A stretch of 64,000 nucleotides of DNA, from positions 10,602,001 to 10,666,000 of the forward strand of contig JBHGNT010000009.1 of NCBI GenBank assembly GCA_043228905.1, given 5' to 3'. Source of the DNA: Azolla caroliniana (Eukaryota > Plantae > Polypodiophyta). Under the pieces are notes generated by a model. That model saw only the letters and a program-made list of their open reading frames with translations. It did no database searches and was not told where the DNA came from. The position numbers and the translations under genes were made by a program. Every line of letters starts with the position of its first letter. The first letter of the stretch is position 1. Shown piece by piece: positions 4,850 through 64,000 of the stretch.

Positions 4850-4852
4850 CAA

Positions 4853-19100: not shown

Positions 19101-19654
19101 GCAATTTGCATCCGATTGATGTCATCAACAACACATCTCCTATGCCAACAATTCGGCATGTACCTTCATTCCCCATCCGGACACGACCATGATCTCCGGC
19201 TATGTAGGATGAGAAGCATTTTTGGTTCGGTGTCAAATGGAACGATGCTCCGGAATCGACAACCCACGTTGTCTCGTCGCCGAAAAGGTTTAACTCATTC
19301 TCCTCGGCAATGAGCATGAGTTCTTCTTCATTTGTCACAATCGTCGACATTCCTTTCCGATTCAGACCTCTCCGGTCCGAACTCTTCTTCAGATCGGTGG
19401 TGTCGGCCCCTTTCTATTTCTGGAAATGCCGATAGTTCTTCTAGAAGTGCCCAGGCTTCCGACAGTAGAAGCAAGTAGGCCTCCCCCTTGACTTCGACCT
19501 CGTCCCCAATTTGTCCCGGTTTTCGGGACTCCAATACAGGCCTCTTCCCCGGTTTTGGTCATCTTCCGTGACCAAGGCCTTCGGATCGGTTCCAAACTCC
19601 CGGTCCTTCCGGCGAGCTTCTTCATCTAGCAGGCTTAATTTTTCCCTTGCAAGG
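16189..19654 (-). pseudogene. pol: C3 pol (PR-INT-RT-RH), decayed; its gag continues at 30451-30965
   Basis: WVVDSGASFH, HTDVCQ, YKAQIVVKG and SWQSRPQKSVALST; multiple stops and frameshifts relative to intact C7. Confidence 0.9.
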
Positions 19655-24927: not shown

Positions 24928-24935
24928 CAAGGGAT

Positions 24936-41000: not shown

Positions 41001-41449
41001 TAAGATTGTAACGCATGTAACGGTTCACGCGGGAAGCGTGAACGGCTAAAAGACCCTGCGTATATAAAGGGCAGAAAACCTCTGATAGAGGGAGCGTGTA
41101 ATTTTGGAATGTAAAGAAGCGTATCGTAATAGAATTCTATCTTCTCTTATATATGTGTATAGCTACGGCTAATCTACTGTGTGTCTGGAATACCTGAGAG
41201 TGTAGAAGTAAGAACATGAGCGTGTAACCACTGATAAGGGGTCGGTTGTAGCCGTCTCCCTTATACGCTGCTAGGTTATGGGGAACATACCCCTATGTAT
41301 TACGCACAGACGCCACCATTCATTGTTTCACAGTCACTTGGAGGTCTAGGTCGAAGGACTGACCGCAGACCGTGTTCCTAATCGGTAACACTTTTGCCAT
41401 GCTTGGTGATCTGTGTCTTCTCACAGACGAACAGCGACGAATGGATGTT

Positions 41450-44400: not shown

Positions 44401-46788
44401 ATGGCTTTAGTGGGTATAACCAGGTACGCATGCATCCCGATGACCACGAGAAGACGGCATTTGTCACGGACTGGGGAATCTATGTGGCAGTCATCATGAT
44501 GTTCGGGCTAAAGACGGCGCCGGCAACATTTCAACAAACAATTACGGAGATCTTTGGGGAATATATTCCGGCGTTCATGCAAGTTTTTTTAGATGACTTT
44601 GCGGTATATGGGAGAACAATCGACCATTTTACGCATCTGCAACTGTGCCTGGAACGTTGTCGCACCGCACGCTTACGCCTAAATCCCACGAAATGTGCCT
44701 TCGGCGCGACCAGCGGGACTCTCCTAGTCAATATCGTCAGCAAGGAGGGAATAGCGGTCGATCCGAACAAGATCTCCGTTATTATGCAAGCCAAAACTCC
44801 GACAAACGCGAAATCACTCAACCGGTTTTTAGGACAAATACGGTGGCATAGTCGGATGATACGATATTTGACGGACTTCACCACGCTGTTACATGTTGTC
44901 GTGCATCGGACTCCCTTCCAATGAACCGCAACGGAGGACAAGGCCTATGAGGCACTTAAGATAATGCTCACACAAGCCCCCATCATACAACCACCAGTTT
45001 GGGCGAAGCCATTCCACATGTTCATCGATGCCTCGGACATAGCAATAGGGAGTGCGCTAATGCAGCTCACCGAACCAAACTAGTATCGGCCAATGTACTA
45101 CGCAAGTCGCAAATTATCAACAGCAGAGCGTAACTATTCCACAACGGAGCGGGAGGCGCTAGGGATGATCTATAGCATCAATAAATTCCGGCATTATTTA
45201 CTGGGGAGGAAATTCACGTTCCACGTGGATCATTCAATGCTGCTGTATTTGGTGGAGAAACAAGCCTTGATGGGGAAATTGGCGCGATGGATGTTGCTGC
45301 TTCAAGAATTCGATTTTGTAATTCAGCACCGATCGGGGATGCAACATGCAGTGGAAGGTTTTTTTGGCAGACTCAATAATGGAGAAACAATACAAAAGGA
45401 CGACGACGATTTTCCGGACGCCGACATCCTGCGGGTAGCAGCACTGGTAGAAAGAACGGAATTGACCTTTCCGGACCGGTGTCTTATGGAAATGATATAC
45501 TTTTTTACTACGGGACTGCATCCACCACAATTACACACGGACGAGAAGAAACGACTAGCCGTCCGAAGTCGTAACTTCTGCCTCGTAGAAGGAATTTTAT
45601 ATCACAAAGGAACTGACGGCATTTGGCGACGTGGACGTCAGAATGAGAAAGAAGCAATTTTACGGGAGGCGCACTGCGGCACAACAGGCGGCCATTACGC
45701 AGGCGATGTTACAGCCCGGAAAATATGCCAGGCGAGCCTATGGTGGCCGACAACACAGAAGGACGCATCCGAATATTGTAGAAAGTGTGATTTGTGTGAA
45801 CGGATGGGCCAACCCACAGAGGGCGCAAGGATGCCACACCAGCCCGTATTACCGTTAGACCCCTTCCAAAAGTGGGGATTGGATTTTGTGGGCCCTTTCA
45901 CACCGGCGGCAACCCGTACGGGCAATAAATACATATTGGTAGCCGCAGATTATTGCACCAAGTGGGTAGAAGCAAAGGCACTACGAGAAAATACGGCGGC
46001 CGTCACAACAAGATTCCTTTACGAGCACATCTGGTGCCAGTTCGGCTGTCCGATTGAGCTCATCAGTGACCAGGGGAGCCACTTTCTCAATACGGTGGTT
46101 CAGGAACTAACACATCATTACGCCGTAGTCCACAAGAAGAGTACGCCATATTATCCACATGCGAATGGGTTAGCAGAATCCACCAACAAGACGTTGCAGA
46201 CCATCTTGAAGAAAATCGTCAATGAAAATAGAACGGACTGGGATACCAAATTACAGAGTGTGTTATGGGCGTACAAAACCAGCTACAAAACAAGCATACA
46301 GTCAAAACCATTTCGACTAGCGTTTGGGTTGGAGGTTGTGATGCCCGTAGAGTTTCAGATACCTAGTTTGCAGATTCAGGTACGGAACCGACTATCAAAA
46401 GCCAAGTTGGAGGAGGTACGGCTCCACCAACTACTCGAACTCGGGGAAAAACGTGTACACAGCATGGTTGCGTTGGAGCAGGAACAACGACGGCGTAAAG
46501 CGTTTGTGGATCGACATCGGAATGCACGGGAAAAGGATTTCGTCGTCGGTCGAGCGGTGTTGGTTTTCCAAACCCGCATGGGCCATATGCCAGGGAAGTT
46601 ACGATTCCGTTGGACAAGCCCGTACTAGATAATTGGAGCGGAACAAGGCACGTTCCAACTAGGTACGCTGGCCGGGGAAGTCTTACGACAAAAGGTGAAT
46701 GGGTTTCGCCTTAAACCTTACCTAGGCCCTACGCCACCTAAACCATTCACCGCCGGACAGGGCAAAGCCGGAGAACCCGCAGCGTAAG
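41450..46788 (+). pseudogene. gag-pol: E3 gag-pol, decayed
   Basis: CFVCQQPGHYATQC knuckle, IIDGG protease, RT DYRKLN...FLDD, RH ERNYSTTEREAL, INT KWGLDFVGP/ISDQG/NGLAE; many stops. Confidence 0.9.
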
Positions 46789-47166
46789 TGGACGGCCCCA
46801 CTTGTATCATAATGTAAAAATAGGATGTATGTAACCGTTACGGGAAAAAGAAAAAAAAAGAAAGAGAAGATAGCGACACATTAAAGAAAAAGGACTATGC
46901 ATACACAGACTCCTAGATCAAGAACACGTGGCACCACGATGGCTCACCACCCAATGAACCCTAAACCACAAAAGAAGGAAATAGAAGATCTTCTGCACAA
47001 AATAGAAACTCACATCCTAACTATTAGCGCTGTCGGGGTAGTTGTGGTTCGTGCGGCGAAGTCGCGGGGACTAAGGTTAAGGGGAGTTGAAGAAACTTAA
47101 GTTTAATAAGGCTTGTATGCTGATGATAGAATGGTTAAGGATAGTAAGATGAAGAGTTACAAGTAA

Positions 47167-47203
<37 letters not shown>

Positions 47204-47403
47204 CGAGCATAGATAAAAGATAGAGACAATGTATGATTCAAGAAAGAAGATTGAGACAAAGTATGATTCTAGAAAGAAGATTGAGACAAAGTATGATTCA
47301 AAGAACAAGAGTATATGATATAAACATGATGTATATTAAAAATATAATATTTTACCAACTTTACAATCCTTGATCGCAAGATAAATCTTTTCAATACCGA
47401 CCC

Positions 47404-47910
47404 TTGATTTGAACCCTCGACCTCAACTTCGAAACGAGAGGTTCTCCACCCAATGAGCTAGTCTTCTTCAATTGATTGTATTATTTTTTTACTCTCTCTT
47501 GATTCCTTCATTCCCTTTTGTTTTCCTTTCCTCTCTTTTTATAAGTATTTCCATGCATATGGTAATGTCATGCATGTAATGCATGAGTTACATCTGATGC
47601 ATGATCGCCATTTGGCGCACATGCATTGCATGTGATGCATGATAGCCATCATGCTCATTTGAGCTCCCATGTATTGGGATAAGTATAATGATGGATATAA
47701 TCCTAAAACAAATAACCTAGCTTAGTGGTGTATGGTTTGTGCTTGATATACAAGGTTGAGGGTTCAAGTCCCTCAATTTTACTTAATACAATATATAGCT
47801 TCATTCTTATATCATGAAGCACATTTATTATACACTTTTACAAATAAATAGCCTAGCCTAGTGGTATGTACATTGTACATCGTATATAAGGATGTGGGTT
47901 CAAGTCTCTT
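47404..47910. other. Three tRNA-like A-box/B-box units inside the G4 LTR (repeated in the 5' LTR and in G3 LTRs)
   Basis: +47711-47780 (TAGCTTAGTGG...GGTTCAAGTCC), +47847-47910 (TAGCCTAGTGG...GGTTCAAGTCT) and -47404-47460 (TAGCTCATTGG...GGTTCAAATC). Confidence 0.7.
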
Positions 47911-47964
47911 AAATATTATTAAATACAACATTTAAGCTCATTTTTATATTGTGAAGCACATTCT

Positions 47965-50900
47965 TCACGACACCCACCCCCTCTGAACTTGCACATTGGT
48001 TGTGCAGAGTTCATCCAACACTTCTTCCGATTCTTTTAGTTCTTCTACTTCTTCATAAAATTCAGGCTCTAATGACTCCCTCCTTTTAAATATTTTAATC
48101 CTTTTTCCTGCAATTGGGATACAAATTTCTGTCCCATCTAATTCATTGAGGAAATATGTGGCTTTATCTGTTATTTTCCTAACTTCATAAGGTCCAAACC
48201 ATCTTTTTGCAAACTTCCGAATAGTACTGTATTGATTATCTAGGCTATTATCATATACTAATACCCAATCTCCCTCTTGCACCTTTCTTGGTCGTATTCT
48301 TTTCATCTTGTCAAATCTGTCCTTATTCTTGATTCTTGCCTCTTTCAATCTAGTAGCTGCTTTTTCTATGTCTTCTATCCTTGATTGAAGTTGTCGTATT
48401 CGAACCGCAAGTAAATCTTCCCTACTCATTTCTGATTCCCAAGGCAACACAACCCATGTAGTTATCTTTTCTTCAATTGGCATTATTGGCTTCTGTCCTG
48501 TGATTAATTCTGCAGGCATATATCCAGTAACAGTGCTGTGAGTTGTCCTATCAGCCCATAGTGCATAGGGTAAGGTTTTTGGCCAATCACTAACCCGTCC
48601 TCTACATGCCTTTGCCAAAGCTTTGACTATTGGCCCATGTCCCCTTTCTACCTTTCCATTAGCTTCTAGATTGTATGCCGTTGTCAAAGAAAGCCGAATT
48701 CCTATTTTGTCGAAAAAATCTTGAGCTTCCGCAGAATTGAGTTCTCCCCTATCTGCCACTATCTTCCCGATACATCCATATCTACAAACAATGTCCTCCA
48801 AGATGAATTGACATACTCCTAATGTCCCTTTTGTTCTCAATGAACGACCTTCCACTTGATTTGTTAGATCTTCTCTAGCAAGAACCAAGTATCTCTTTTG
48901 TCCTACTCCAAGTGGCATTGTTACCAAATCTATCATCCACTTGTAATGCACCCCCGGTGAGTATGTTGGGTGTAATTCATCACAAAATTTTACATTTGAA
49001 TAATATTGACAAGTGGGACAAGTTTCCACATACTTTTTTATTTGCTCATAGTATCGAGGCCACCAAAATCGTTCTTTAATCTTACTGAAAGTGGCCCACA
49101 CTCCTCGATGACCAGCCCATTCTTTGTCATGCAGCTCTTTGATTATCTCCTTTCTTTGCCCTTCAGAACCTATTACTCTTTGCGGGTTTCCAATCTTGGT
49201 TTTCGGATGTCGCCATAGATATCCTTCATACAGGAAGAACTTATGGGCTTTCTTGCGAAACTGTGCGAACTCTTTTCCAGATCGACCTTTGTACTTGTTA
49301 GGGGTTTGTAGGTATTTCCCTATTTCCTTGAATTCATCTTCATACTCCTCTTCTAGAAACTGCATTCCTCCTTCCCGAGTAATGCTTGTGGTAAGGACTG
49401 TTTGTTCTTTGTCCTCATCGTCCGAGTCTGGAATCTCCTCTTCCTCATACCTTGCTCTTGATAACATATCTGCTACTGCATTTCTATTCCCAGAGATATG
49501 TCGAACTTCAGGGTTGATTGATCTAATATAGATACACCATCTTAACATGGCTTGATCTGGAATATCACAATTAGCTATGATACCCAGAATAGGCAAACAA
49601 TCAGTTTCTATTATTACTTCAGCACCAATTAAGTAATCTCTGTCTGTCTTTACAGCTGTTACTATCCCCCATAGCTCTCTTTTCACCTGTGCATATTTTC
49701 TTTGTCGACCACTAAGAACCTTTGCCCCGAATCGGACTGGATACCTTTCTTCCCTATCTTGTTGGCTTATCACCCATCCAATTCCAATGGGACTAGAGTC
49801 TACTGTGAGATATATGGGCCGGGTGTAGTCTGGTTGCTTTAATGGTGGAGCTTGTGCCAAGTAGTACTTCAATTTCTTCATTGCCTCTGAATGCTCTTCA
49901 CTCCATTCAAATGTCTCTCCTTTTCTTAGGAGTCTATATAAAGGTTCAGATAAATGGGCATAATGCGGAATCCATTTACAGTAAAAAACACATACCCCCA
50001 GAAACCTTCGTACTTCTGAGATGGATGTACATTCCTCTTGCATATTTTGAATTGCATTGACCTTGGTTGGGGATGGCTTTCTCCCATACGGGCCACACAT
50101 ATGACCAACTATTAATATCTCTTTTGCCCCAAATATTGACTTCGCCCCTGATAAGGTCAAATGCACTTCTTCCATCCTTGATAGCACCTTCTCACAATCC
50201 TTGATATGATCAGCAACGAATTGACGGCAACCACTTTCGTCCAATTCCTCGTTCTTCTCTTCCTCCTTGCATCCCTTAATTGGAACATCATCTAGAAAAG
50301 GCATTGTAATATGAGGAATAAAATCACGAAGTACCTTGTTCATTCCATTCATCATATGCGCCACTGAGTTGGTCGCTCCTTGCGGCAAGGTGCACATCCG
50401 TACTAACCCTATAGGTGTCTTGATAGAAGTTATATCTCGACTTTTGATAGCAAGTTGAAATTGATCATATCCAGAATAAAGGTCTCCCATTGAATATATA
50501 GCTCTTCCTGCAAACATCTCAGCAAACTCATCCACAATTGGCCCTACTCCCGAGTTTCGGATTGTTACCTTATTCACGGGTTGCATATCTTGGATAAATC
50601 GGAGTCGCCCATCTTTCTTTAACACAGTGAACCATCGACTCGAGTAAGGAGCGTTCGATGGTTCCAAGATACCCATCCTTATCTTTTCTTTCAAAAGTTC
50701 TAATAGTTGAGGGATTCTAGCCCTAGGCATGGGTATTGGCTTAAAGTTCCATGGAATATGAGGGATAGTGAATATAACCATGGGCTCCACAATTTCTGGA
50801 TCCACACACCCTATTTCCTCCGGTTGGAATGCAAACGCCTTTCCATGCCTTTTTAACATCTCCCTGAACTGCTTTTCTTCAGCGGGTAATAGGAAGTCAC

Positions 50901-51420
50901 CCCCTCCTATTTTCATCCCTTGTATTGTTTCCGGAGTAAACACATGTCCTACCTTTCGTGGGTCTCTGATCATTGGCTCTGTGGCTGCTTCTTTGATTGC
51001 CTTTTCACTATCCCCTGGAAGTGGAGCAGCAATAGGACGAACCTTCTTCTCCACTGTCTTGTATTTTGTTAGTACATGTGCTTCATGATCCTTTCGAGCA
51101 ACTTCTTCAATGACCTCATACATCTTGATTGAATGGACAGGAACTTGGATTTCGTTGTCTTCTTCCATTGCTTCCAAATGAGTTATTGTATCTTCAAAAC
51201 TTAATTCTTCAAACATATCCTGAATTTCTTCATCATCATCTATTAATCCAGAACACTTAAAGTACTCGAAAGCATTTTGTATTTTATTATTATTTACTTT
51301 TAGTATAAAAGTAGCACCATTAGATGAGATTGTACAAGGAATATCTTTATTTACATTATTATTTATGGGGTTTTCTTTTATGCTCGGGCTATCACAACCC
51401 CTACAAGCCCTATCTAAAAA
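47965..51420 (-). CDS. pol: G4 pol (RT-RNase H-integrase); frame stays open upstream of the first ATG (51216) as far as the gag stop
   Basis: 1083-aa ORF with LPQG, FLDD, RH and INT motifs; the stop codon lies inside the LTR start. Confidence 0.93.
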   Translation of the reverse strand, partial: FLDRACRGCDSPSIKENPINNNVNKDIPCTISSNGATFILKVNNNKIQNAFEYFKCSGLIDDDEEIQDMFEELSFEDTITHLEAMEEDNEIQVPVHSIKMYEVIEEVARKDHEAHVLTKYKTVEKKVRPIAAPLPGDSEKAIKEAATEPMIRDPRKVGHVFTPETIQGMKIGGGDFLLPAEEKQFREMLKRHGKAFAFQPEEIGCVDPEIVEPMVIFTIPHIPWNFKPIPMPRARIPQLLELLKEKIRMGILEPSNAPYSSRWFTVLKKDGRLRFIQDMQPVNKVTIRNSGVGPIVDEFAEMFAGRAIYSMGDLYSGYDQFQLAIKSRDITSIKTPIGLVRMCTLPQGATNSVAHMMNGMNKVLRDFIPHITMPFLDDVPIKGCKEEEKNEELDESGCRQFVADHIKDCEKVLSRMEEVHLTLSGAKSIFGAKEILIVGHMCGPYGRKPSPTKVNAIQNMQEECTSISEVRRFLGVCVFYCKWIPHYAHLSEPLYRLLRKGETFEWSEEHSEAMKKLKYYLAQAPPLKQPDYTRPIYLTVDSSPIGIGWVISQQDREERYPVRFGAKVLSGRQRKYAQVKRELWGIVTAVKTDRDYLIGAEVIIETDCLPILGIIANCDIPDQAMLRWCIYIRSINPEVRHISGNRNAVADMLSRARYEEEEIPDSDDEDKEQTVLTTSITREGGMQFLEEEYEDEFKEIGKYLQTPNKYKGRSGKEFAQFRKKAHKFFLYEGYLWRHPKTKIGNPQRVIGSEGQRKEIIKELHDKEWAGHRGVWATFSKIKERFWWPRYYEQIKKYVETCPTCQYYSNVKFCDELHPTYSPGVHYKWMIDLVTMPLGVGQKRYLVLAREDLTNQVEGRSLRTKGTLGVCQFILEDIVCRYGCIGKIVADRGELNSAEAQDFFDKIGIRLSLTTAYNLEANGKVERGHGPIVKALAKACRGRVSDWPKTLPYALWADRTTHSTVTGYMPAELITGQKPIMPIEEKITTWVVLPWESEMSREDLLAVRIRQLQSRIEDIEKAATRLKEARIKNKDRFDKMKRIRPRKVQEGDWVLVYDNSLDNQYSTIRKFAKRWFGPYEVRKITDKATYFLNELDGTEICIPIAGKRIKIFKRRESLEPEFYEEVEELKESEEVLDELCTTNVQVQRGWVS

Positions 51421-51423
51421 TCC
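51367..51423 (-). promoter_or_regulatory. Candidate -1 ribosomal frameshift signal (slippery site plus H-type pseudoknot)
   Basis: G GAT TTT directly before the gag-PR TAG; 6-nt spacer; stems GGGCT/AGCCC and GGGGTT/AACCCC; pol is in the -1 frame. Confidence 0.75.
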
Positions 51424-53528
51424 TGGGAAAACTCTTCATCCATCTCTTGAATTGGATGTTCCCTCAAGCATTCTTTGTTTCTTTCATGGTTGGGCCTCAC
51501 GGTTAAGAATTGGACAGTCTTTCTTCCATCTTGACTCTTGATTCTCGCGAAAGCCGAACCATCATCAATAACCTTTGTTTCCATCCTCACTGCGGTGATG
51601 TAGGGCTGGCCAAGGATGACGGGGTAGGTTGATCGATCCTGCACAAAGAAATTTTGATTCACCGAGACATCACCAATTGTTACCTTCACACTAGGACATG
51701 CTCCGAATAGATCCTCCGTAGTTTCTGTGGCAGCTCTTATTTTCCACCCATGATTCTTGTCGATCGGCCATCGTCCTCGAGTGTAAAATTCCGATGACAT
51801 CATGTTAATCTCTGATCCATGATCAATCAAAGCAATACATGGAATTTGCTGCTCCCCAATTTTTGCAGGTGCCTCCGTTGTTGCTCGAGCCCAATGGTCC
51901 CTTGTATAGTGACTCCTATCCCCTTCATGGACGCCAACATCATTCTGGTTTTTTACACTTGCAGCATTGATGGTGCCACCATACAAATCTTGGAGTGTTG
52001 TTGCACACCCTCCCGTAATTTCCTCCGTCACCTGTCTCTTCCTTCTAATAATATCTATGATAACTTCATGAAATTCTTTCTTTGCTATACCCAACACTTC
52101 TCTTAAAGTAAATTCTACCTTACTATTTAATATTCTTGTTTCTAGTACCTTTTTTATATCCGTCGTTGTTTCTATGTCTGAGGCAAGCTTGAAAGATGGG
52201 CCTGTCTTTCCTTTTACTTTATCAGCTTCCTTCGGCTCAATAGCACCCTTTTCCATCTCCCTTCTCTTTTGTTCTCGTGTCTCATGTCTCTTTGTCGGAT
52301 CAGCTTCCTCAGCTCTCTTCCGCTTCTCTTCCACTAGCACATCTTGTGCATTCACTTGGGCGAATGCTGATAGCGCGTCTACTGGATCATTCCATCCAGT
52401 GAAGTTTCGTATTTCATCTCCCGCTCTTTTTAATTCATCCACTCGAACCTTCCCTTTTCTTGCATAATCCATCACATCTTGCCAAAAGCCAGATCCACCA
52501 TATGAGTCTTCTACGTGCAATCCTAAGGTTGCCACGGATTGTATCGCTTGAGTCGTTTCTCTCTCGGCATCTTCCATTAGCTTTTTCATTCCTCCTCGCC
52601 CAAAGTTGAGTTGAAGTGGTTGTCGAGTCTCAGTTGAGTGAATCTTGCCATCTTGATAGTAGATTTTATTATGATTAAGAGCATCCCTATGCTCTTGACA
52701 ATCTTTTTTCTGGTGGTCGATACTATCACACCACATACACCTTCGGACCATTCCACCTCCTTGCCTTGATGAAGTCGAGCTTTGTCCCGATTCTAGCTTC
52801 GTCACTTTGATCGACAAGTCTTTCATGCCTTTCACTAATTCGTGTAAGAGTGATTCTTCTACTTTCTTTTCTCCCGACTCGTTTCCCGTTTCTTCATCAT
52901 TTCTGTCGGGCAACTCCATAAACCATAACTTTCTTTTGCAGAAATGGGCGCACGCCCTTTTCACCTCCTCCCAATCTTCGGTAAGTCCACTTGGACTATT
53001 CTGATCTTCTAAAAGCATTCCCAAGTCCTTCCTGTCTTTAATATTAGTAGCTTGTAGAAACAATATTACTTTATCTGGCACTATTATATTTCTATCTCTA
53101 ACATTTAGTTGCTCAAATCTTTCAGAAAACTCTTTTAATACTTCCAAAACACTTAAATGTTTATTAGACTCTACCCAATCCATGAAAGCTCGCCTTGTCA
53201 TCCTTGACATATCGTTGAGGTTGTATTCATTGAGTAATGCCCTTTCGAATGTTGTCCATGTCTGATTCTCCCTTTGGAGCTCTTGGATCTTCTCTTGTAG
53301 CCCAATTGCAGCGACTCGACTAAAGCTATTAATTTTTGTAGCTTCGTCGACACCGCGTTTAAGCATTTCTTCATTATAAATCTTCAGAAATCTTGTTAAA
53401 TTTATACCTTCGAAGATTCCTACTCGTGCGAGAATATTGTCGACCGCTTTGTCGATGCTTGCCATCATCCCTTGTTCCCGCATCACTCGTTCCATCATCG
53501 TACACATAAGCCTCATTTGCTCCTCCAT
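51414..53528 (-). CDS. gag: G4 gag-protease
   Basis: 704-aa ORF; CMWCDSIDHQKKDC knuckle; retropepsin LIDHGSEIN...VILGQP. Confidence 0.93.
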   Translation of the reverse strand: MEEQMRLMCTMMERVMREQGMMASIDKAVDNILARVGIFEGINLTRFLKIYNEEMLKRGVDEATKINSFSRVAAIGLQEKIQELQRENQTWTTFERALLNEYNLNDMSRMTRRAFMDWVESNKHLSVLEVLKEFSERFEQLNVRDRNIIVPDKVILFLQATNIKDRKDLGMLLEDQNSPSGLTEDWEEVKRACAHFCKRKLWFMELPDRNDEETGNESGEKKVEESLLHELVKGMKDLSIKVTKLESGQSSTSSRQGGGMVRRCMWCDSIDHQKKDCQEHRDALNHNKIYYQDGKIHSTETRQPLQLNFGRGGMKKLMEDAERETTQAIQSVATLGLHVEDSYGGSGFWQDVMDYARKGKVRVDELKRAGDEIRNFTGWNDPVDALSAFAQVNAQDVLVEEKRKRAEEADPTKRHETREQKRREMEKGAIEPKEADKVKGKTGPSFKLASDIETTTDIKKVLETRILNSKVEFTLREVLGIAKKEFHEVIIDIIRRKRQVTEEITGGCATTLQDLYGGTINAASVKNQNDVGVHEGDRSHYTRDHWARATTEAPAKIGEQQIPCIALIDHGSEINMMSSEFYTRGRWPIDKNHGWKIRAATETTEDLFGACPSVKVTIGDVSVNQNFFVQDRSTYPVILGQPYITAVRMETKVIDDGSAFARIKSQDGRKTVQFLTVRPNHERNKECLREHPIQEMDEEFSQDF

Positions 53529-53702
53529 TTCTCCTCGTCGCCGCCTTCACGTCGGGTTCACCAAATGTGTCGGGGTAGTTGTGGTTCGTGCGGCGAAGTC
53601 GCGGGGACTAAGGTTAAGGGGAGTTGAAGAAACTTAAGTTTAATAAGGCTTGTATGCTGATGATAGAATGGTTAAGGATAGTAAGATGAAGAGTTACAAG
53701 TA

Positions 53703-53703
<1 letters not shown>

Positions 53704-53774
<71 letters not shown>
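53704..53774. repeat. (GT)n(GA)n microsatellite in the G4 5' LTR; shorter allele at about 47167-47203
   Basis: Directly visible; accounts for the 34-bp LTR length difference. Confidence 0.95.
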
Positions 53775-54643
53775 CGAGCATAGATAAAAGATAGAGACAA
53801 TGTATGATTCAAGAAAGAAGATTGAGACAAAGTATGATTCTAGAAAGAAGATTGAGACAAAGTATGATTCAAAGAACAAGAGTATATGATATAAACATGA
53901 TGTATATTAAAAATATAATATTTTACCAACTTTACAATCCTTGATCGCAAGATAAATCTTTTCAATACCGACCCTTGATTTGAACCCTCGACCTCAACTT
54001 CGAAACGAGAGGTTCTCCACCCAATGAGCTAGTCTTCTTCAATTGATTGTATTATTTTTTTACTCTCTCTTGATTCCTTCATTCCCTTTTGTTTTCCTTT
54101 CCTCTCTTTTTATAAGTATTTCCATGCATATGGTAATGTCATGCATGTAATGCATGAGTTACATCTGATGCATGATCGCCATTTGGCGCACATGCATTGC
54201 ATGTGATGCATGATAGCCATCATGCTCATTTGAGCTCCCATGTATTGGGATAAGTATAATGATGGATATAATCCTAAAACAAATAACCTAGCTTAGTGGT
54301 GTATGGTTTGTGCTTGATATACAAGGTTGAGGGTTCAAGTCCCTCAATTTTACTTAATACAATATATAGCTTCATTCTTATATCATGAAGCACATTTATT
54401 ATACACTTTTACAAATAAATAGCCTAGCCTAGTGGTATGTACATTGTACATCGTATATAAGGATGTGGGTTCAAGTCTCTTAAATATTATTAAATACAAC
54501 ATTTAAGCTCATTTTTATATTGTGAAGCACATTCTTCACGACAGCGCTCCCATCGCTCCTCCCCCTCACCTTCTCCTCCATCCTATCACAGAGCTCCAGC
54601 CCACCGCAACCACTAGTCTCCTCCCCACAAACCTACTCTAGCG

Positions 54644-57378
54644 ATGTCAATCTTCATCTCTACCGCCTTACGCTGATGGCTCGTGGAGAAACGCATGGAT
54701 GGGTACATCCAGGTCGCAGAGGCACCTCCACACCCGGATGCCATGGACATCGCCAGGAAGCTTAACATCGACACGGTCACCAACTCTTCCATCCGGAAAA
54801 AGTTGGACCTGTCATCGCTAGGCGAAAGGCATTTTGAAATCCCTCCTGCAGAGGCGCTGCAGAGATATTTTGGTCCATAATCCTCCTCCGCCAAGGCCTA
54901 TAGAACGAAGCAGATCCCGGATCCCTTCTTCCGTGAAGTCACCAAGTTCCTGTTAGAGGTCGGATGCGTACATGTCAACGCATATGGGATGCCCAAGCAG
55001 AAGGGGGGTATCATTATTGATACCTTTGAAGGGCGTGTGGTCGATTGGGGGGTCATCACAGGGCCGGAGTTAAGGGAAGGCATGCATGCGTATCAAGGAG
55101 GCAAGAAGCTCAGGCTGATCATACAACGGTACCTTACAGTGCTATTCCCACCCCGAGGCCTGGCGGCACCGCAGCCCAGCTGACCCACGCCTCCCCCTCG
55201 ATCCGCGAAGTGCAGGTTAGCGGAGTTAGCTCCCCAGAGTGGGAAGAGGAACCCCAACCCGCCCAGCCAGACACACGGACAACGCAGGAAGAATAGCCAG
55301 CACGCTCCGCGGAAGCAGCCCCAGAGCCAGACGTCGAAACACAACAGGATAGCCCCAAACCGAAACGGCGGAGGTTGGACAGGAAAGATGAGCGGGGATT
55401 GGTCAAAGACGTCCACACGACGGTAGAGACAACGACCAAAGGCGATGGGTCCGTAGCTACGGAGCCCAATACCACCTTCGAAATCATCCAAGAGCCACGG
55501 TTGATCATTACGACCCAATCACAACAAGGGAAAGCCGTATTGACGGCAGAAAGCGAGGTTTTGGCATATCTAGATATCATGGACACAACCCATGAGTTCA
55601 ACGCCCTCTTGTAGTTCGGAACCTCTTTTGAGCTCATGGAATTCCTGGCAATGCAACAAATAAAGGCCTCACAACGAATGGCCGAAGAGCACGCAGAGCG
55701 CCAAATGATCGAGCACGCCCTAACACAAATGGCGGAGAGCGACGATGAGGACTGGCTAGCCAAGGTCGGCAGACAGAGGAACACCAGTGTACGTCGAGTG
55801 GGGATAGAGCTACCCCCATTAAACACGGCCCTAGTCGAAGTCCACAGGGAACTGGCAAAGGTCAGCACGGGTGCCAAGGAGATGGCCATTAAAAATAAGA
55901 ATGTCTGGAAGAAGGTGAAACTGACCCAAGCCGAGCTGCAAAAAGCCAACGAACGCATCACGGAGTTGGAAACTAACGCGACTACGGCGCAACAGGCAAC
56001 TCTGCCACCAAACCAGGCCATCGACGCCTTGAAGGAAGAGATTGAGGTTCAGACCGCCATTGCCTCAAAAGGAAAAAGGGTCGTACAACTAGCGGAATCA
56101 AAAATTGACCGCCTTCGCACTGAACTTCGCCAATCCTCCGACATGGAAAAGGATATCCGGACTCACGGCCGGAAGGCAGTAAAAACCCTTGAAGAGAAAC
56201 TCGCTGTGGAGGTCGCTCAGTACACCCAAACAAAAGAAGAAAACGCCCAATTACAAGAGTAAGCGAAGAAGTCGGAGACAGCAATCGCGGGACTCCGGGC
56301 CTTACTGGAGAAAAAGAAGGTATGGTTCGACGAGCAGCTGGTGGGCGAACAGGAAAGAAGGTATCAGCTCGAAATCCACCTAAACAATGAAATGGGGAAA
56401 TTAGAAGAACTCCATGCGAAGGAAGCCTAGTTGTGGGCGGGCATGAAGAGCATGTACGAAGAAGCGGTGGCAGTTAGCTAGCAAGAAATTGCAAACCTCA
56501 AGAAGGCGGTAGAAGAAGCACGCAACCGCTGCCATGCCATCACAGACAACGTGCGTATCCTTCTCCAAACGAATCGGGAGAGGTTCACAATGCAATTGAA
56601 AACGGCGCTAGACAAAGGATGGATGGCGTGGGCAGCCCAGGTAGTGGAATTGCACGCGTATCGTGCGGACTGGGAGAACAGGCGAAAAGACGGTCGAGGC
56701 TTCGATAAACTCAATGAGGAGAGCATTGCGGCAGTACGCGAGGACCTAGCGCAGGACTATCGCGCGCTAGCGGACCAACATTCTAAAGAACTCGCGCAGC
56801 TCTTAGACGATTTTGGGGAAAGCCAGGAGGATCTGTTTTACCAAATCACACAAGCCGGCAGCACGCGAACTAATGAGGAATCCGTCGCGCCACCAATTCC
56901 GGACACTGCCGAAGAAGAGGAACCTCAGGCCAAGTCCCCCGACATTACAACTACGGTGAACAGCAAGGAACGACGAGTGGGGTCCCCCACATTACCAAAC
57001 AGCGAAACCACGGCCCAAGAGGAACCCCATCTCTCGGAGCTTATGCTAGCAGCCGACCACACGGAGAACATTGCGGACCCAGCGAAACCGCAACCCCACT
57101 CCCCGGAGCGTACAACGACGGCCGACACCACGGAGCGACTGACAGAGGAGACAAAGCCGCGACCGACCGCACGCCTGCCGACGGCTAAGCTCAACACCCT
57201 AGCCCAAGAAGAGCCCACAGAACCCGGACCGCCCACATAGGACGATCGCGACACCAGGAGGAGCCCTTCTGACCACACAGGGGACCTACACCACAATGCA
57301 CCTACAGGCCCTACGCCGTCCCCAAACGCGGACACCGTAGCAGAGCCAAACATCCGGGACATTTGCGAAGAAGATTAA
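54644..57378 (+). pseudogene. Extra ORF of E3 after integrase (about 900 aa, long coiled coil), with several stops and one frameshift
   Basis: Collinear ORF pieces at 54683, 54989, 55375, 55636 and 56551; E/K/Q/A/L-rich heptad-like region; divergent homolog in E2. Confidence 0.8.
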
Positions 57379-57384
57379 CGGGAT

Positions 57385-57423
57385 GGGTCCGACGTGCCAG
57401 GGCACTGTCCCACAGGCGTGTCA
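57385..57423 (+). other. tRNA 3'-end-like motif at the PPT position of E3 (also in E1 and E2)
   Basis: GGGTCCGACGTGCCAGGGCACTGTCCCACAGGCGTGTCA-GG-LTR; no purine tract present. Confidence 0.75.
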
Positions 57424-59344
57424 GGTGTTGTCCGCCGGAATAGTAACCGACCGACAAGAGCGCAGGAATAGGAAATAGTATATATAAGATTGTAACGCAT
57501 GTAACGGTTCACGCGGGAAGCGTGAACGGCTAAAAGACCCTGCGTATATAAAGGGCAGAAAACCTCTGATAGAGGGAGCGTGTAATTTTGGAATGTAAAG
57601 AAGTGTATCGTAATAGAATTCTATCTTCTCTTATATCTATGTATAGCTATGGCTAATCTACTGTGTGTCTGGAATACCTGAGAGTGTAGAAGTAAGAAAG
57701 TGAGCATGTAACCACTATTAAGGGGTTGGTTGTAGTCGTCTCCCTTATACGCTGCTAGGTTACGAGGAACATACCCCTACGTATTACGCACAGACGCCAC
57801 CATTTGTTGTTTCACAGTCACTTGGAGGTCTAGGTCGAAGGACTGACCGCAGACCGTGTTCCTAATCGGTAACAAAGGGCAGCGAAAGAAGTGCCAGCAC
57901 CGTGACAGCAAGGGAGCTGAGAAGGGCCACATGAGCAGACAAGCCGACCGGAAGGGTCGAGGTGCGCAGAATCAAACGGGTCGAGGAGCGCGTGCGAGGC
58001 GTGAAGCCAGGAGAAGCTGGTGCGAAGATCCGGAAGAGCAGGTGGAACCTCAAGTTGAGCTTGAGGGGGAGTGTTGAGATACAAGCTCAACATTGGGTGT
58101 GTAACCCAATGCGTAGACTGGGTGCATAAAACTATACGCACAAAGGCCGTAATGGTGCGTACGCCGAGAGGCCGTTAGAACGTTATTCCTCGTAAGGAAT
58201 AATTTTGGGAGTTAGTGTAGGAGGCTCATTAATGAGCATTGAAGTATGTGTCAGTACTCTATTAGTACTTCTGTCTGTCCATAAGGACTTGTGTATAAAA
58301 AGTGTCGATTGAGCGCATCTTGCATAGAGTGACTGAGAGTTATTTTTGAATCTAAGTTTTGTGTATTCTGCTCACTCTCTCTCTCATTCTGTCTCTCCTA
58401 CATACGTTGTGTCGTGTTCAAAGCTTTCCATTAAACCTTGTCTTCGTCATCTGTGTTACATGGTTGTGTGTGTTACGCTTCCACACACGCTATTCTTTTA
58501 CATGCTCTTCCTCCATTTTGGCCGTTGTCGCTACTTGTTGCCTAGCTAGGTGATCTACTAGCTTGAATGATGTCCCAATTTGCAATAAGGCCTCCATCTC
58601 CTACGCTTCTAGTGGGATATTTGGGTAGCAAAGGATTGTGTGTCCTCGGAGATTCAGGAAGCTTGTCCTTCTTGTGCTTTCCCCATCCACGTGGTGGTTG
58701 TGTCGGTTATTGGTGCCAATGTTTGTTCCTGCTCCACCAGTACTATTGTTGCCACCCCATCATCTGTTTGCTGGTTGCTTACTATTTCGGTGCTTCTTGC
58801 CTTGGCTTCTTTGGACAATCCTTGACCGTTCTTCCTATCCATGTGCCATTTCTTCGGTTTAACGTTTTGCCCTGCCACTTATTTTTTCGTCTTCTCGCCT
58901 CGTTTTCGAATGGTGAAGTCACTCTCCGCACTTCCTGTTGGCTTTTGTGACTCCATTTGCCTTGACTTCCTACCTAGAGTCATTGGTTTGGCGTTAGCCA
59001 ATGCCTTTTGTTGGGCCGATGACTCGTTTTGCGCTTGACCCAAGGTGTCCTCTTCCTCCCATTCAACTTGTTGCCTGCATGATAGGCACTGCTTCTTTCT
59101 AGGTAGCGATCGCGACATTGGCAATTTCTTCTCAGTAAGGCTAGGCATGTTGGGTATAATTCGACTAGGTATTGTGCCATGATAGGCAATACCTTTTTGC
59201 CTGCCTGCAAAGAGAGGATGTTTGCCCGTAATGAAGATTGAATATGTGCGGAAAAGTATGTGTGTGGATATGTCGTAGTGTTCAGCAAACAACACAGAAG
59301 GAAGGCAAGAGAATAAATAGAGAATGGAAGCATCTGCCTCTTCT

Positions 59345-59672: not shown

Positions 59673-60129
59673 TGTTGAAAAAACCGTGCTCGGCCACAGC
59701 CAAGGAATAGGATCAACTCTCAGAAAACAGGAAATACAACAATGCACGAAAACAATAGAGAGAGGGGCACACTGAAATGGGAAAAAAACCACGGGAGTGC
59801 AAGACTCCAACTATCACTATACACGGAATGTACAATGGCGAGCTGCAAGGCGACGACCTTGAGCTCGCTGTCCTCGCCACAGGCGGCGGTATTACACAGA
59901 GGCGTCGACCTCTTCCTTCCTCCTTCTCTTTCACTCTCTCTCGGCTGCTCTCACTTCGCTCCCTCTTAGTGAAAACAGAAGATGAGCAACAACAATAAAC
60001 TGTTTGCCCTAAGTCATATTTATACACATATGACTTTCGGGCTATTTACAAGTATAGCCTCAAAGGGCTCTTGGCAAACATATTCACAAATATGTCCCCG
60101 CATCCGGATCTCTCTCCGGGTACATTCGT

Positions 60130-60336
60130 CATCCGGCTCCGTAACCGGGGTCTTCAGCATCCGGCTCCGTAACCGGGGTTTTCAGCATCCGGCTCCGTAA
60201 CCGGGGTCTTCAGCATCCGGCTCCGTAATCGGGGTTTTCAGCATCCGGCTCCGTAACCGGGGTCTTCAGCATCCGGCTCCGTAACCGGGGTCTTCAGCAT
60301 CCGGCTCCGTAACCGGGGTCTTCAGCATCCGGCTCC
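60130..60336. repeat. 28-bp tandem repeat, 7 copies plus a partial, in U3 of the C7 LTR
   Basis: Unit CATCCGGCTCCGTAACCGGGGTCTTCAG; copies are near-identical. Confidence 0.95.
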
Positions 60337-60389
60337 CGGACATCCGACCATCCCATCCGGAGGGACCGTAATCCCAACAAACTCCCCCT

Positions 60390-63300
60390 TCACTTCGGCA
60401 TGGGATGTCTCTCCAATCCGATCCTCTTCCGGCATGCTTCCAGCTTGTCGGGTGTGAGCACCTTGGTCAGCATATCCGACCCGTTCTCGTCCGTGTGGAC
60501 CTTCGTCAGCACGAACTCCTTGTCTTCTATCCTTTCCCGGATCCAGTGATATCTTCGCTGGATGTGCTTCGTCCGGGAGTGATAGGCCGCGTTCTTCGCA
60601 AGGTGGATGGCACTCTGACTGTCGCAGTAGAGTCGGTACTCCTCTTGCTGGATACCGAGCTCTCTAATGAAGTCCTTCATCCATATTATTTCCTTGCCGG
60701 CTTCAACAGCCGCCATGTACTCCGCCTCCGTGGTTGACAACGCAACCGTCTTCTGCAGCCTCGACTGCCATGAAACAGCTCCCCCTGCGTACGTCATCAC
60801 ATACCCTGATGTGGACCGGCTGGTATCTGCATCAGCCGACATATCCGAATTGGTAAAGCCGTCGAGTTCGGGCTTACCGGAGCCGAATCGGAGGCACACG
60901 TTTGCCGTGCCCTTCAGGTATCGGAGTATCCACTTGGCCGCGTTCCAATGCTCTTTGTCGGGATTGCTCATGTACCGGCTCACCACTCCGACTGCATATC
61001 CTATGTCTGGTCTTGTACACACCATTGCGTACATCAAGCTTCCGACGGCAGAGGCATATGGCACTTTCATCATGTCCTCCTTCTCAGCCTTTGTCTTGGG
61101 ACTTTGCTTGCTGGACAACTTGCAGTTTGCCGGGAGGGTTGACCCGACCGGTCTTGCTTCCGACATGTTGAACCGTTGAAGCACCTTTGTCACGTACTTC
61201 TCCTGTGACAGCCACAACTGCTTCTTCTTCCGGTCCCGGATGATGTGCATCCCTAATATTTGCCTCGCCGGACCCAAGTCCTTCATTGAGAAGGTTCGGT
61301 GAAGAGCCTTCTTCAGCATCCGTATCTTGACCTGGTCCCGTCCGACGATCAACATGTCGTCCACGTACAGGAGGAGTATTAGAAAGTCTCCTCCTTCGAA
61401 CTTCTTCATAAACACGCAGTGGTCGGACTGCGTTTTGAGGTACCCTTCGTCGGTCATGAAGGAGTCGAACTTCCGGTACCATTGCCGGGGAGCCTGCTTC
61501 AGTCCGTAAAGGCTCTTCTTCAACCGGCATACCAGGTGCTCCTTCCCTTTCTTCTCGAATCCTTCCGGTTGCTGCATGTAGATTTCTTCTTCGAGGTCAC
61601 CGTGAAGGAATGCCGTCTTCACGTCCATCTGTTCTACTTCGAGGTCCATGCTTGCCGCTATGCTCAGCACCGTCCGGATGGAGGTCATCTTCACTACCGG
61701 GGCAAATATCTCGTCGAAGTCGACGCCCTTCTTCTGCTGAAACCCCTTCACCACGATCCTGGCTTTGTATCTCGGGGGGTTTCCGGCATCTCCCGGTTTC
61801 AGCTTGAACACCCACTTGTTACGGAGTGCCCGTTTTCCTTTCGGCAGCTCCACAAGTTCATATGTGTGGTTCTCATGCAGGGAATCCATCTCGTCCTGCA
61901 TGGCACTCAACCACCTGCGGCTCTGGGTGTCATGCTTTGCTTCTTCAAAGCTCTCCGGCTCCCCCTCGTCGGTTAGCAGCACGTGCTCTGGTTCCGGAAA
62001 TCTCCGGGGGGCCCTTCTCTCCCTTAGAGGATATCTCCGTTCCGGAGCTTCGGTAACCGGTTCTTCCGATTCTTCTTCATCCGAATCCATTTCGGGATCG
62101 GGGCCGGTCCCGGTATCATTTTCATCTTCTTCGGCCGGTTCTGTTTCTTCACCGTCTTCGGCCGGATCCTCGAGTGCTAACCGGTCCCTTGCCGGTCGGG
62201 ACTGCTCCTCGTAGAGTTGATCCTCACCGGTCGACTTGGAGCTCTTCATCTTCTTCTCCGACTCCAAGTCGGCGAGTGTCTTGTCCTCCATGAAGATGAT
62301 GTCTCGACTCCTGAATATCTTCTTGTCGACCGGGTCCCATACTCGGTAGCCGAACTCGTCGTCGCCGTAACCGAGGAATATGCATGGCCGGGTCTTTGGA
62401 TCTAGCTTTCCTCTCCGGTCCTTTGCCACATGCACGTAAGCGAGACACCCGAACACCTTCAGATGCCGGTAGGACACTTCCTTACCGGTCCACTCTTTCT
62501 GCGGCGTGTCTCCGTCCAAAGGTACTGAGGGTGATCTGTTTATCACGTATGTCGCCGTCGACATTGCCTCAGCCCAAAACCCCTTGGGTAATTTCGCATG
62601 CGCCAGCATACTCCGGACCCTCTCCATTATGGTCCGGTTCATCCTCTCGGCCACCCCGTTCAGTTCCGGCGTCTTCGGCACAGTAAACTCGAGCCGGATT
62701 CCCTTCGAGTGACAGTACTCCTGGAACTGCCCCCGGTATTCCCCTCCGTTATCCGCTCGTATCGTTTTCAGCTTCTTGCCGGATTCCCTTTCCACTCTCG
62801 CGTGGAGTTCTTTGAAGACGGACAATACTTGGTCCTTTGTCTTCAACGGTGCTGTCCACAGCTTCCGGCTGTGATCATCAATGAAAGTCACGAAGTACTG
62901 GGCTCCGCCGTGTGACTTCGTTTCTACCTGACACACATCAGTATGCACCAACTCCAATGGTGCGCTACGTCTCGTCGGTGGCCTTGAGTGGAAGGAGGTT
63001 CGGTTCTGCTTACCGGCCAGGCAATCGGTGCACTTCTCCAGGTGCACATGCTTCACTGGAATAAGGTTGTCTTCTGCAAGCCTCTTCATCCCTTTCTCAC
63101 TCATGTGGCACAGTCTCTTGTGCCACAGCTCACCGGCAGCGTCGGCTGCCACGTTCAGCTCCTCCGGACATAGCCGGGAGTTCATCAGGTACAGGGTGTT
63201 GACCTTCCGGGCCCGAGCCACTATCAGGCTCCCCTTGCTGAACTTCATGACACCGTTCCGGATGCTACCCGTGTAGCCTTCATCATCTAGCCTCCCGGCC

Positions 63301-64000
63301 GAGATCAGGTTCAATCGGACCTCCGGAACGTGTCGCACATCCTTCAACAGCATCTTGCATCCGGTTGATGTCAACAGCCACACGTCTCCTATGCCGGCAA
63401 TCCGGCATGTGCCTTCATTTCCCATCCGGACACAGCCGTGCTCACCGGTTGTGTAGGATGAGAAGTATTTCTTCTCCGGGGTCAGGTGGAACGACGCTCC
63501 GGAATCAACCACCCAGGTCGTCTCTACACCGGCAAGGTTCAGCTCCCTCTCTTCGGTAATGAGCATGATTTCTTCCTCGCTTGCCGCGAGTGCCGTCGTT
63601 CCTTTCCGGTCCTGCCCTCGCCGATCCGGACCTCTTCGGTCCGTGGCTCCCCGGTATGCACCGTTTCTCTCCGGTGACTTCTTCGAATCGGTGTCGTCGG
63701 CTCCGTTGTCCTTTCGGTAATGCCGACAATTCTTCCGGAAGTGCCCCGGCTTCCCACAGTGGAAGCATGTTGGCCTTCCTCTTGACTGCGACCGGGTCCC
63801 CGACTTCTCCCGTCTTTGCGGACTCCGGTTCCATTGTCTTCCCCGATCCGATTCGGTAAGCAGCATCTTCTGATCAGAAACCGGTTCTTTATCTCTCCGA
63901 CGCGCTTCTTCGTTCAAAATACTTGTCTTTACCGTTTGTAGGGACAAGTTATCTTCGGTGCAGGAGGTGCTGAGAGTCACCACCAAGTTCTCCCAGCTGT
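60390..64000 (-). CDS. gag-pol: C7 intact gag-pol (open to window end)
   Basis: 1198-aa uninterrupted ORF: CFHCGKPGHFRKNC, DSGAS, HTDVC/RADNG/NGVAE, YVDD, RH TEAEY...SDMLTK. Confidence 0.96.
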   Translation of the reverse strand, partial: SWENLVVTLSTSCTEDNLSLQTVKTSILNEEARRRDKEPVSDQKMLLTESDRGRQWNRSPQRREKSGTRSQSRGRPTCFHCGKPGHFRKNCRHYRKDNGADDTDSKKSPERNGAYRGATDRRGPDRRGQDRKGTTALAASEEEIMLITEERELNLAGVETTWVVDSGASFHLTPEKKYFSSYTTGEHGCVRMGNEGTCRIAGIGDVWLLTSTGCKMLLKDVRHVPEVRLNLISAGRLDDEGYTGSIRNGVMKFSKGSLIVARARKVNTLYLMNSRLCPEELNVAADAAGELWHKRLCHMSEKGMKRLAEDNLIPVKHVHLEKCTDCLAGKQNRTSFHSRPPTRRSAPLELVHTDVCQVETKSHGGAQYFVTFIDDHSRKLWTAPLKTKDQVLSVFKELHARVERESGKKLKTIRADNGGEYRGQFQEYCHSKGIRLEFTVPKTPELNGVAERMNRTIMERVRSMLAHAKLPKGFWAEAMSTATYVINRSPSVPLDGDTPQKEWTGKEVSYRHLKVFGCLAYVHVAKDRRGKLDPKTRPCIFLGYGDDEFGYRVWDPVDKKIFRSRDIIFMEDKTLADLESEKKMKSSKSTGEDQLYEEQSRPARDRLALEDPAEDGEETEPAEEDENDTGTGPDPEMDSDEEESEEPVTEAPERRYPLRERRAPRRFPEPEHVLLTDEGEPESFEEAKHDTQSRRWLSAMQDEMDSLHENHTYELVELPKGKRALRNKWVFKLKPGDAGNPPRYKARIVVKGFQQKKGVDFDEIFAPVVKMTSIRTVLSIAASMDLEVEQMDVKTAFLHGDLEEEIYMQQPEGFEKKGKEHLVCRLKKSLYGLKQAPRQWYRKFDSFMTDEGYLKTQSDHCVFMKKFEGGDFLILLLYVDDMLIVGRDQVKIRMLKKALHRTFSMKDLGPARQILGMHIIRDRKKKQLWLSQEKYVTKVLQRFNMSEARPVGSTLPANCKLSSKQSPKTKAEKEDMMKVPYASAVGSLMYAMVCTRPDIGYAVGVVSRYMSNPDKEHWNAAKWILRYLKGTANVCLRFGSGKPELDGFTNSDMSADADTSRSTSGYVMTYAGGAVSWQSRLQKTVALSTTEAEYMAAVEAGKEIIWMKDFIRELGIQQEEYRLYCDSQSAIHLAKNAAYHSRTKHIQRRYHWIRERIEDKEFVLTKVHTDENGSDMLTKVLTPDKLEACRKRIGLERHPMPK

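Follow-up and report, generated by a model that had tools for sequence, protein, structure and literature searches.

The window analysed here, i.e. the whole stretch of 64,000 nt from position 10,602,001 to 10,666,000 on the forward strand of contig JBHGNT010000009.1 (Azolla caroliniana, assembly GCA_043228905.1), is a nest of long terminal repeat (LTR) retrotransposons. Three of its elements, termed E1, E2 and E3, each carry a non-purine module of 38-39 nt, which ends in CCA (TCA in E3) and stands 2 nt before the 3' LTR. The presence of a tRNA-end module in the position of the polypurine tract (PPT) is confirmed: an earlier note on this DNA had described a motif of about 39 nt roughly 2 nt ahead of the 3' LTR in three elements, and all three were found where it had placed them. 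For the degenerate module pattern, 0.00 chance occurrences are expected in the window. The parts of the three modules and the adjoining repeats are given below, with tRNA positions according to an alignment of 54 distinct module copies (alignment A1).

40937-40941: left target-site duplication of E3, AAGGG; the identical 5 bases flank the 3' LTR at 57875-57879
40942-41390, plus strand: 5' LTR of E3, TGTTG...TAACA, 449 bp, 96% identical to 57426-57874, module-free
57383-57392, plus strand: T-stem 5' strand ATGGG (from GTGGG) and T-loop TCCGA (from TTCGA) of E3; tRNA 49-58
57385-57423, plus strand: E3 module, followed by the spacer GG (57424-57425) and the LTR from 57426
57393-57407, plus strand: inserted hairpin of E3, CGTGCC AG GGCAC TG, at tRNA 59/60
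57409-57423, plus strand: T-stem 3' strand CCCAC and 10-nt tail AGGCGTGTCA of E3, i.e. acceptor 3' strand, discriminator and CCA; C66 is missing
57426-57874, plus strand: 3' LTR of E3, 449 bp, 96% identical to the 5' LTR
57875-57879: right target-site duplication of E3, AAGGG, the same 5 bases as the left copy
5498-5520, plus strand: 5' part of the E1 module, the last 5 nt of which (ATTGT) are the duplicated target of a copia element
13064-13078, plus strand: 3' part of the E1 module, CCCATAGGCATGCCA; GG comes next, and the LTR spans 13081 to ~13437
15132-15170, minus strand: E2 module, 39 nt; the spacer TG (15131-15130) comes next, and the LTR begins, in decayed form, at 15129

A tRNA-end module in the position of the polypurine tract

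Since the 5-bp target duplication AAGGG is present on both flanks, the LTR limits of E3 are secure, and the boundary as placed in the earlier note holds at this edge. The 3' junction of E1 is split by a copia insertion (5521-13058; target duplication ATTGT at 5516-5520 and 13059-13063), and with the insertion removed, the motif rejoined from 5498-5520 and 13064-13078 reads as had been claimed; the LTR start that follows matches the L012/L021/L044 family. In E2, comparison with L084 identifies 'TGAGTTGG' as the spacer TG plus a decayed TGTTGG, and this likeness of the LTR start to L084 resolves the E2 spacer as 2 nt as well. The module lies outside the LTR, and none is found in the 5' LTR of E3.

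With respect to tRNA-Arg(UCU), the module consists of positions 49-58, a hairpin insert and positions 61-76 without C66. A T-arm is mimicked at the sequence level, i.e. GTGGG/CCCAC and TTCGA are kept and the insert sits after A58. The motif had previously been read as a copy of the tRNA-Arg(UCU) 3' end including CCA with a hairpin in the T-loop; full tRNA copies (L005:1190-1265) match the tRNA sequence on which that reading was based, and ARAGORN classified this segment, found in DNA of the same plant, as a 76-nt tRNA-Arg(tct) including CCA. No tRNA gene was found by ARAGORN in the 64,000-nt window, and an Rfam scan of the module gave no tRNA match, which is not surprising for a tRNA 3' part that an insert interrupts. 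In eukaryotes, CCA is not encoded in the tRNA gene, and therefore the module either derives from or is matched to mature tRNA. All copies with the hairpin lack C66 and all uninterrupted copies have it, so that both changes mark one derived sub-lineage. The sense of the module is that of the tRNA, hence it is not complementary to the tRNA in genomic RNA. The module is best read as having arisen by retro-copying of the 3' part of tRNA-Arg(UCU), which is also the probable minus-strand primer at the 5' primer binding site (PBS).

Metagenome contigs were scanned with a pattern that fixed GGGTTCGA, CCCAC and GGCGTGCCA, the conservation of which is therefore unreadable from this sample, and that left free the insert, the upstream bases, the spacer and the LTR start. 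The scan gave 120 loci in independent assemblies, ~70 of them 38/39-nt modules, and also retroelement copies of longer tRNA pieces, up to the whole tRNA. Most of the ~70 copies come from one assembly series evidently holding DNA of this plant or a close relative, an assignment based on the E1-type LTR start found there. They precede at least four LTR types that cannot be aligned, with a short spacer (2 nt in nearly all) and then TGT.

In addition, host contigs from three DNA runs of the organism (3,166-4,420 contigs per run) were examined over 56900-57900. Depth was 1,300-17,700 upstream of the module, ~110,000 across it and ~200,000 at its 3' end and the LTR start, and this 20- to 40-fold rise implies that the module is common to far more family members than the preceding sequence is. 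At 57421, C makes up 99.5% of the depth as against T in E3, so that the family form ends in CCA (GTGCCA at the end of the 10-nt tail), and the terminal TCA of E3 is a decayed CCA. The only other well-supported difference within the module is at 57400, in the hairpin loop.

Within the 30 nt that precede the LTR, the longest purine run of the 54 copies has a median of 4 nt and a maximum of 6 nt; in the controls, i.e. the copia elements C2 and C3 and the nested gypsy of the window as well as L126 and L130, runs of 8-14 nt abut the LTR. The PPT next to the 3' LTR, a standard trait of Ty3/gypsy elements, is absent near the LTR in all 54, which bears out the idea that the motif stands in its place. 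The candidate GAGGGGGAG at 15053-15061, which had been named as a possible true PPT of E2, is ruled out, as it lies ~70 nt inside the E2 LTR.

Three outgroup relatives at 41-47% integrase identity (L003, L126 and L130) have canonical purine tracts and PBSs for other tRNAs; the target duplication was verified for L126 (Riccia sorocarpa) and for L130, the LTRs of which are 99% identical. This comparison excludes L002, L124, L125, L127, L128 and L129, contigs without a usable 3' LTR junction. Since the outgroups keep canonical purine tracts and PBSs for other tRNAs, the module is a derived character of one clade.

Primer binding site and inserted hairpin

A PBS complementary to the tRNA 3' end over 10 to 26 nt, as is typical of Ty3/gypsy elements, is present in family copies and decayed in E3.

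41395-41409, plus strand: 5' PBS of E3, decayed, TGCCATGCTTGGTGA, 4 nt after the LTR
Right after the LTR: PBS of the E1 family, TGGCACGCCC, a 10-nt match in 9 contigs
L018 family: 26-nt PBS, complementary to tRNA 51-76 (one base decayed); the same tRNA span as the module
E3 family: PBS TGGCACGC, then two T (possible wobble with tRNA G), then GGTG

Family contigs of E3 that run past the LTR end (loose ends at 57874) continue with CTTT and TGGCACGC..., complementary to the 3' end of tRNA-Arg(UCU). Given the PBS complementarity in the E1, L018 and E3 families, the predicted minus-strand primer is tRNA-Arg(UCU). The weaker tRNA match of the E3 PBS had been noticed correctly and reflects decay, the family form being complementary; a function in pairing with the motif, suggested alongside, is disfavoured, as the PBS follows the tRNA. 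The check proposed in the earlier note, covariation between PBS and 3' motif, came out negative: the E1 (C-G) and E3 (T-A) families seemed compatible at first, but L018 breaks the pattern, since its PBS position 10 keeps the tRNA-complementary C and the matching module base is A. Likewise, positions 11-14 of the E3-family PBS are the tRNA's GGTG, not the module's GTGG. The PBS therefore tracks the tRNA and not the module, which argues against both self-priming and PBS-module pairing as selected functions. Occurrences of TGGCACGC in L031 and L117 were rejected as PBSs, as they lie inside the gag coding sequence.

As to the inserted helix, 94.8% of its cells are paired in A1, and compensatory changes are found in 4/5 hairpin pairs, i.e. 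C-G or A-U in 25 vs 24 copies, U-A to G-C in 7 and to A-U in 1, and G-C to A-U in 2 and 1. When the partner was slid by 1-3 columns as a control, 39-54% of the cells were paired, and none of 500 shuffles attained the observed covariation score; one of five by-catch copies is a further compensated variant. The hairpin is therefore a selected structure. Single-sequence folding energies were not better than those of shuffles (z -1.4 to +0.6), so that this claim rests on covariation and not on energy. Read on the plus strand, the hairpin has G:U in 6 cases and A:C in 2, a weak hint that the plus-sense strand is the folding one.

The GT of the T-stem upstream of the hairpin, which the search pattern left free, is present in 78-93% of the copies. 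From the hairpin core to the final A there are 18 nt, and from the outer pair 16 nt, which matches the length of tRNA 59-76. In the minimum-energy folds of L001 and L044, it is exactly the 10-nt tail that is largely unpaired. Extra nucleotides are tolerated in the T-loop after position 58, and right after A58 is also where plus-strand strong-stop synthesis normally halts on the primer tRNA. The 5' arm and loop of the hairpin (57393-57399; CGTGCAA in many copies) nearly repeat the tRNA end CGTGCCA (57417-57423), and the insert may have originated as a partial duplication of the acceptor end, with later compensated changes erasing the likeness in some families.

Proposed plus-strand priming and its alternatives

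Taken together, the sequence data are best read as marking the plus-strand priming site of a gypsy lineage that lost its PPT. As regards position, the module precedes the LTR in E1, E2 and E3 and in the ~70 copies, before at least four unrelated LTR types; as regards selection, the hairpin covaries, the depth rises at the module, and L001, which has an intact open reading frame (ORF) of 1048 aa, carries it. We put the probability at about 0.4 that the plus-strand primer is host tRNA-Arg, either entire or as an 18-nt 3' fragment, that anneals to minus-strand DNA. By the same tentative account, one host tRNA (or 3' fragment) may prime both strands: at the PBS, with RNA as template, it would start the minus strand, and at the mirrored, tRNA-sense module, with minus-strand DNA as template, the plus strand. 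Among the three mechanisms put forward in the earlier note, priming of the plus strand by a host tRNA remains as the best candidate, a self-primer at the PBS (which follows the tRNA over up to 26 nt in L018) is disfavoured, and an antisense genome is rejected.

In such a scheme, the 3' end of the plus-strand primer would define the left LTR edge, with 2 nt trimmed by the integrase; since the LTR starts 2 nt after CCA, the primer would have to end in CCA-3'OH. Minus-strand DNA would be synthesized across the module and the template RNA cleared by RNase H, whereupon a second host tRNA-Arg, or the 18-nt 3' fragment, would anneal to the minus-strand copy of the module through 10 contiguous bases, 5 more past a 1-nt bulge and 8 T-arm bases beyond the hairpin. 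The annealed tRNA would then prime U3-R-U5 synthesis, mirroring the PBS, and would be removed by RNase H like the minus-strand tRNA. The hairpin, placed right after A58 where the T-loop tolerates insertion, probably limits the hybrid or helps the template RNA to peel off, and would leave 16-18 nt to CCA, i.e. the length of tRNA normally in the RNA/DNA hybrid. In a common variant, the tenth base from the end is A instead of G, and pairing with the tRNA would be preserved as a T:G wobble on minus-strand DNA. Priming by the host tRNA would account for the sequence of the PBS tRNA including its non-templated CCA, for the 51-76 span that mirrors the longest PBS and for the tolerance of the G-to-A change.

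Several points weigh against this scheme. The hairpin insert and the deletion of C66 cut the contiguous complementarity to the tRNA to 10 nt. The excess of G:U over A:C on the plus strand, together with the spared T-loop pentanucleotide, hints at a fold of plus-sense RNA, which would fit priming by the element's own RNA at least as well. Moreover, the tRNA-Arg used as reference consists of retro-copies and not of the host's genuine tRNA-Arg gene, and the primer is read from DNA contigs (plus one contig guessed to be RNA), not directly.

The element's own RNA as plus-strand primer is the main alternative, which we consider only somewhat less likely than the host tRNA, and several observations speak for it. 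Here, T-arm and hairpin would refold and peel off, the last 10-18 nt would stay hybridised, and RNase H would nick after CCA, leaving a fragment to be extended. Such a course agrees with the hairpin covariation and the G:U tolerated on the plus-sense reading, with the position of the insert exactly after A58 and the upstream GT kept although the pattern left it free, and with the largely unpaired tail in the folds of L001 and L044. The hairpin-CCA distance, equal to the 59-76 segment of the tRNA, also equals the usual spacing between the polymerase and RNase H sites of retroviral reverse transcriptase. With the hairpin as the limit of the primer, this alternative would account better than the host tRNA for a covarying hairpin of plus sense located precisely at position 58/59. 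No new annealing step would be needed, and RNase H already requires the specificity to cut a tRNA primer at CCA. However, RNA/DNA hybrids of mixed sequence are normally degraded by RNase H, and we know of no non-purine internal primer in LTR elements; the fold energies, no better than those of shuffles, count against it as well, and it does not by itself explain the identity of the tail to the PBS tRNA, which priming by the host tRNA would.

A further alternative is that the module serves mainly in RNA-RNA pairing with the 5' PBS, for cyclisation, for dimerisation or for masking the PBS from tRNA fragments, and that a weak, unrecognised primer starts the plus strand. In the E1 family, the 10-nt PBS and the 10-nt tail of the module are perfectly complementary, and Ty1, Ty3 and Drosophila gypsy provide precedents for 5'-3' interactions close to PBS and U3 (PMC1635307). 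We nevertheless regard this as improbable: PBS and module do not covary (C in L018 against A in the module, GGTG against GTGG in the E3 family), and pairing leaves both the lack of a purine tract and the almost invariable spacing of 2 nt from the LTR without an explanation. The same complementarity between tail and PBS would serve a module that, once cleaved behind CCA, acts as minus-strand primer at the PBS, i.e. Tf1-like self-priming from the 3' side, which we find barely credible, since the PBS matches the host tRNA over up to 26 nt, beyond and unlike the module, and the template would lose U3-R through the cleavage. Elements of the Tf1 type have their self-primer at the 5' end of the transcript.

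Finally, the module could be a neutral relic of a one-off template switch onto a tRNA, or a DNA-level signal such as a B-box/TFIIIC site, or the genome could be antisense; we hold this group of explanations to be very improbable. GGTTCGA is the core of the B box of RNA polymerase III (Pol III), and tRNA-Arg modules are common in LTRs of this genome (L051). Against a relic stand the position fixed before unalignable LTRs and the compensated hairpin; against a B box, the CCA and acceptor strand, which are kept though unneeded, and the insert, which interrupts the box. An antisense genome is contradicted by the PBS and the TATA box on the sense strand: on the coding strand, the 5' LTR is followed by the tRNA-Arg PBS, and the opposite strand has no purine tract adjoining this LTR. 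Even taken together, self-priming, a relic or B box and an antisense genome have little chance of being correct.

Priming by a host tRNA at the module would resemble known systems only in part. Canonical PPT priming shares the position abutting U3 with a 2-nt spacer and the putative role in setting the left LTR end, whereas the module is not purine-rich (longest run 3-6 nt), is derived from a tRNA, ends in CCA and contains a hairpin. Minus-strand priming at the PBS shares the same tRNA-Arg(UCU), the span 51-76 (L018 family) and a mirrored geometry with a short spacer; however, the module is tRNA-sense, so that the tRNA could pair only with the DNA complement of the module, and priming would occur on a DNA template and start the plus strand. 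Hepadnaviruses also combine reverse transcription with a non-purine RNA primer of the plus strand, yet they are an unrelated family in which the primer is a capped RNA oligomer that stems from the 5' end of the pregenome, is translocated to DR2 and does not resemble a tRNA. In Tf1/sushi self-priming and in the CYC5-CYC3 pairing of Ty1, the PBS region has a complementary segment elsewhere in the RNA of the element itself, as here; unlike there, the PBS follows the host tRNA and not the module, the segment is at the position of the plus-strand primer, and a PBS matched to the element's transcript instead of a tRNA, the mark of Tf1-type self-priming, is not found. The bipartite PBS of Ty3 and the 3' PBS of Drosophila gypsy (PMC1635307) are likewise tRNA-related elements near the 3' end of a Ty3/gypsy genome, but they are complementary to internal parts of the tRNA, bind as RNA, coexist with a PPT and have no CCA at the LTR edge. 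Helenus terminal-repeat retrotransposons in miniature (PMC10886601) contain tRNA-derived sequence, but inside the LTR as a Pol III promoter and together with a normal PPT, in contrast to a module outside the LTR without a PPT.

The nearest cases (3' PBS of Ty3 and Drosophila gypsy, 5'-3' pairing of Ty1, Tf1 and Helenus) therefore keep a purine tract or differ in sense or position. No published description of a tRNA-end module in place of the PPT was found in full-text literature searches or in a survey of REXdb, which covers PBS types and not polypurine tracts. If our reading is true, an LTR retroelement that replicates with no RNase H-resistant polypurine primer would be known for the first time, and a successful plant lineage would show a second solution to plus-strand priming. 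In every textbook scheme of retroviruses and LTR retrotransposons known to us, the second strand starts at the PPT, which is also a hallmark used in annotation, and PPT-based LTR annotators will misjudge these abundant elements. The element would also be bound more closely to one host tRNA and to 3' tRNA fragments, which are known to target PBS sequences. The hairpin and the missing C66 provide a natural tag that separates a host-tRNA primer from an own-RNA primer.

Element architecture and neighbouring insertions

Apart from the missing PPT, E3 shows the traits of a Ty3/gypsy element, i.e. TG...CA LTRs, a 5-bp duplication and the order gag, reverse transcriptase, RNase H and integrase; it is lodged within a copia element. 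Its interior comprises the following features.

42756-46628, plus strand: gag-pol remnants of E3, Pfam order zf-CCHC, RVT_1, RT_RNaseH, Integrase_H2C2, rve
47031-54543, minus strand: younger gypsy element nested in E3, with 99.9% identical LTRs and the canonical purine tract AGAGGGGGTGGG
54644-57378, plus strand: extra ORF region of E3, 3' of the integrase and up to just before the module, with tblastx homology to E2 pieces

The extra ORF of E3 is conserved at the protein level in comparison with E2. An intact counterpart of 1048 aa, also 3' of the integrase, is found at L001:1649-4795, with its stop 12 nt before a clean module; this relative was reached via the integrase (P0006, 74% identity). 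In the 1048-aa protein, a globular N-terminal region is combined with a long, charged tail of coiled-coil-like character, and there is no Pfam hit on record for it. According to REXdb, a tRNA-Arg PBS is listed for TatIII, Ogre and Retand, and both traits of the Tat/OTA non-chromoviruses, i.e. a tRNA-Arg PBS and an extra ORF downstream of the integrase, are found here; the possible assignment to the Tat lineage is only a lead.

The integrase of E1 is located at 62-1240 on the plus strand. E2 (minus strand) had been taken as one contiguous element, which was not borne out: its 3' part is scattered by nested insertions over 59231-58496, 35822-35125, 31921-31529 and 15627-15132. The region beside E2 at 15628-31495 and the copy at 60350-64000 ('E4') were rejected as gypsy elements, being copia (RVT_2), and the same applies to 16149-19387 (at first glance a gypsy interior).

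Among the copies outside the window, the short-read metagenome contigs L044, L031 and L117 run from the 3' interior through one LTR into PBS and gag, which reflects either real tandem arrays or assembly collapse; such contigs allow both junctions to be read but are not proof of tandem copies. At L044:102-2250 (minus strand), an E1-family copy of ~2.1 kb lies between two LTRs without an obvious gag-pol, possibly as a non-autonomous derivative in which LTR, 10-nt PBS and module are retained. Three full-length tRNA-Arg(tct) copies with encoded CCA occur within 1.4 kb on a plant-derived contig (L051:536-1894), which suggests arrays of retro-copied tRNA-Arg modules in or next to the LTRs of related elements.

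Within the window, a long (CA)n run at ~53700-53760 is located in the 5' LTR of the young nested gypsy element. The copia element that extends from 60350 to beyond 64000 on the minus strand has an intact gag-pol ORF of 1198 aa, and on its 3' side, at 60097-60364, there is a 28-bp tandem repeat in ~10 copies.

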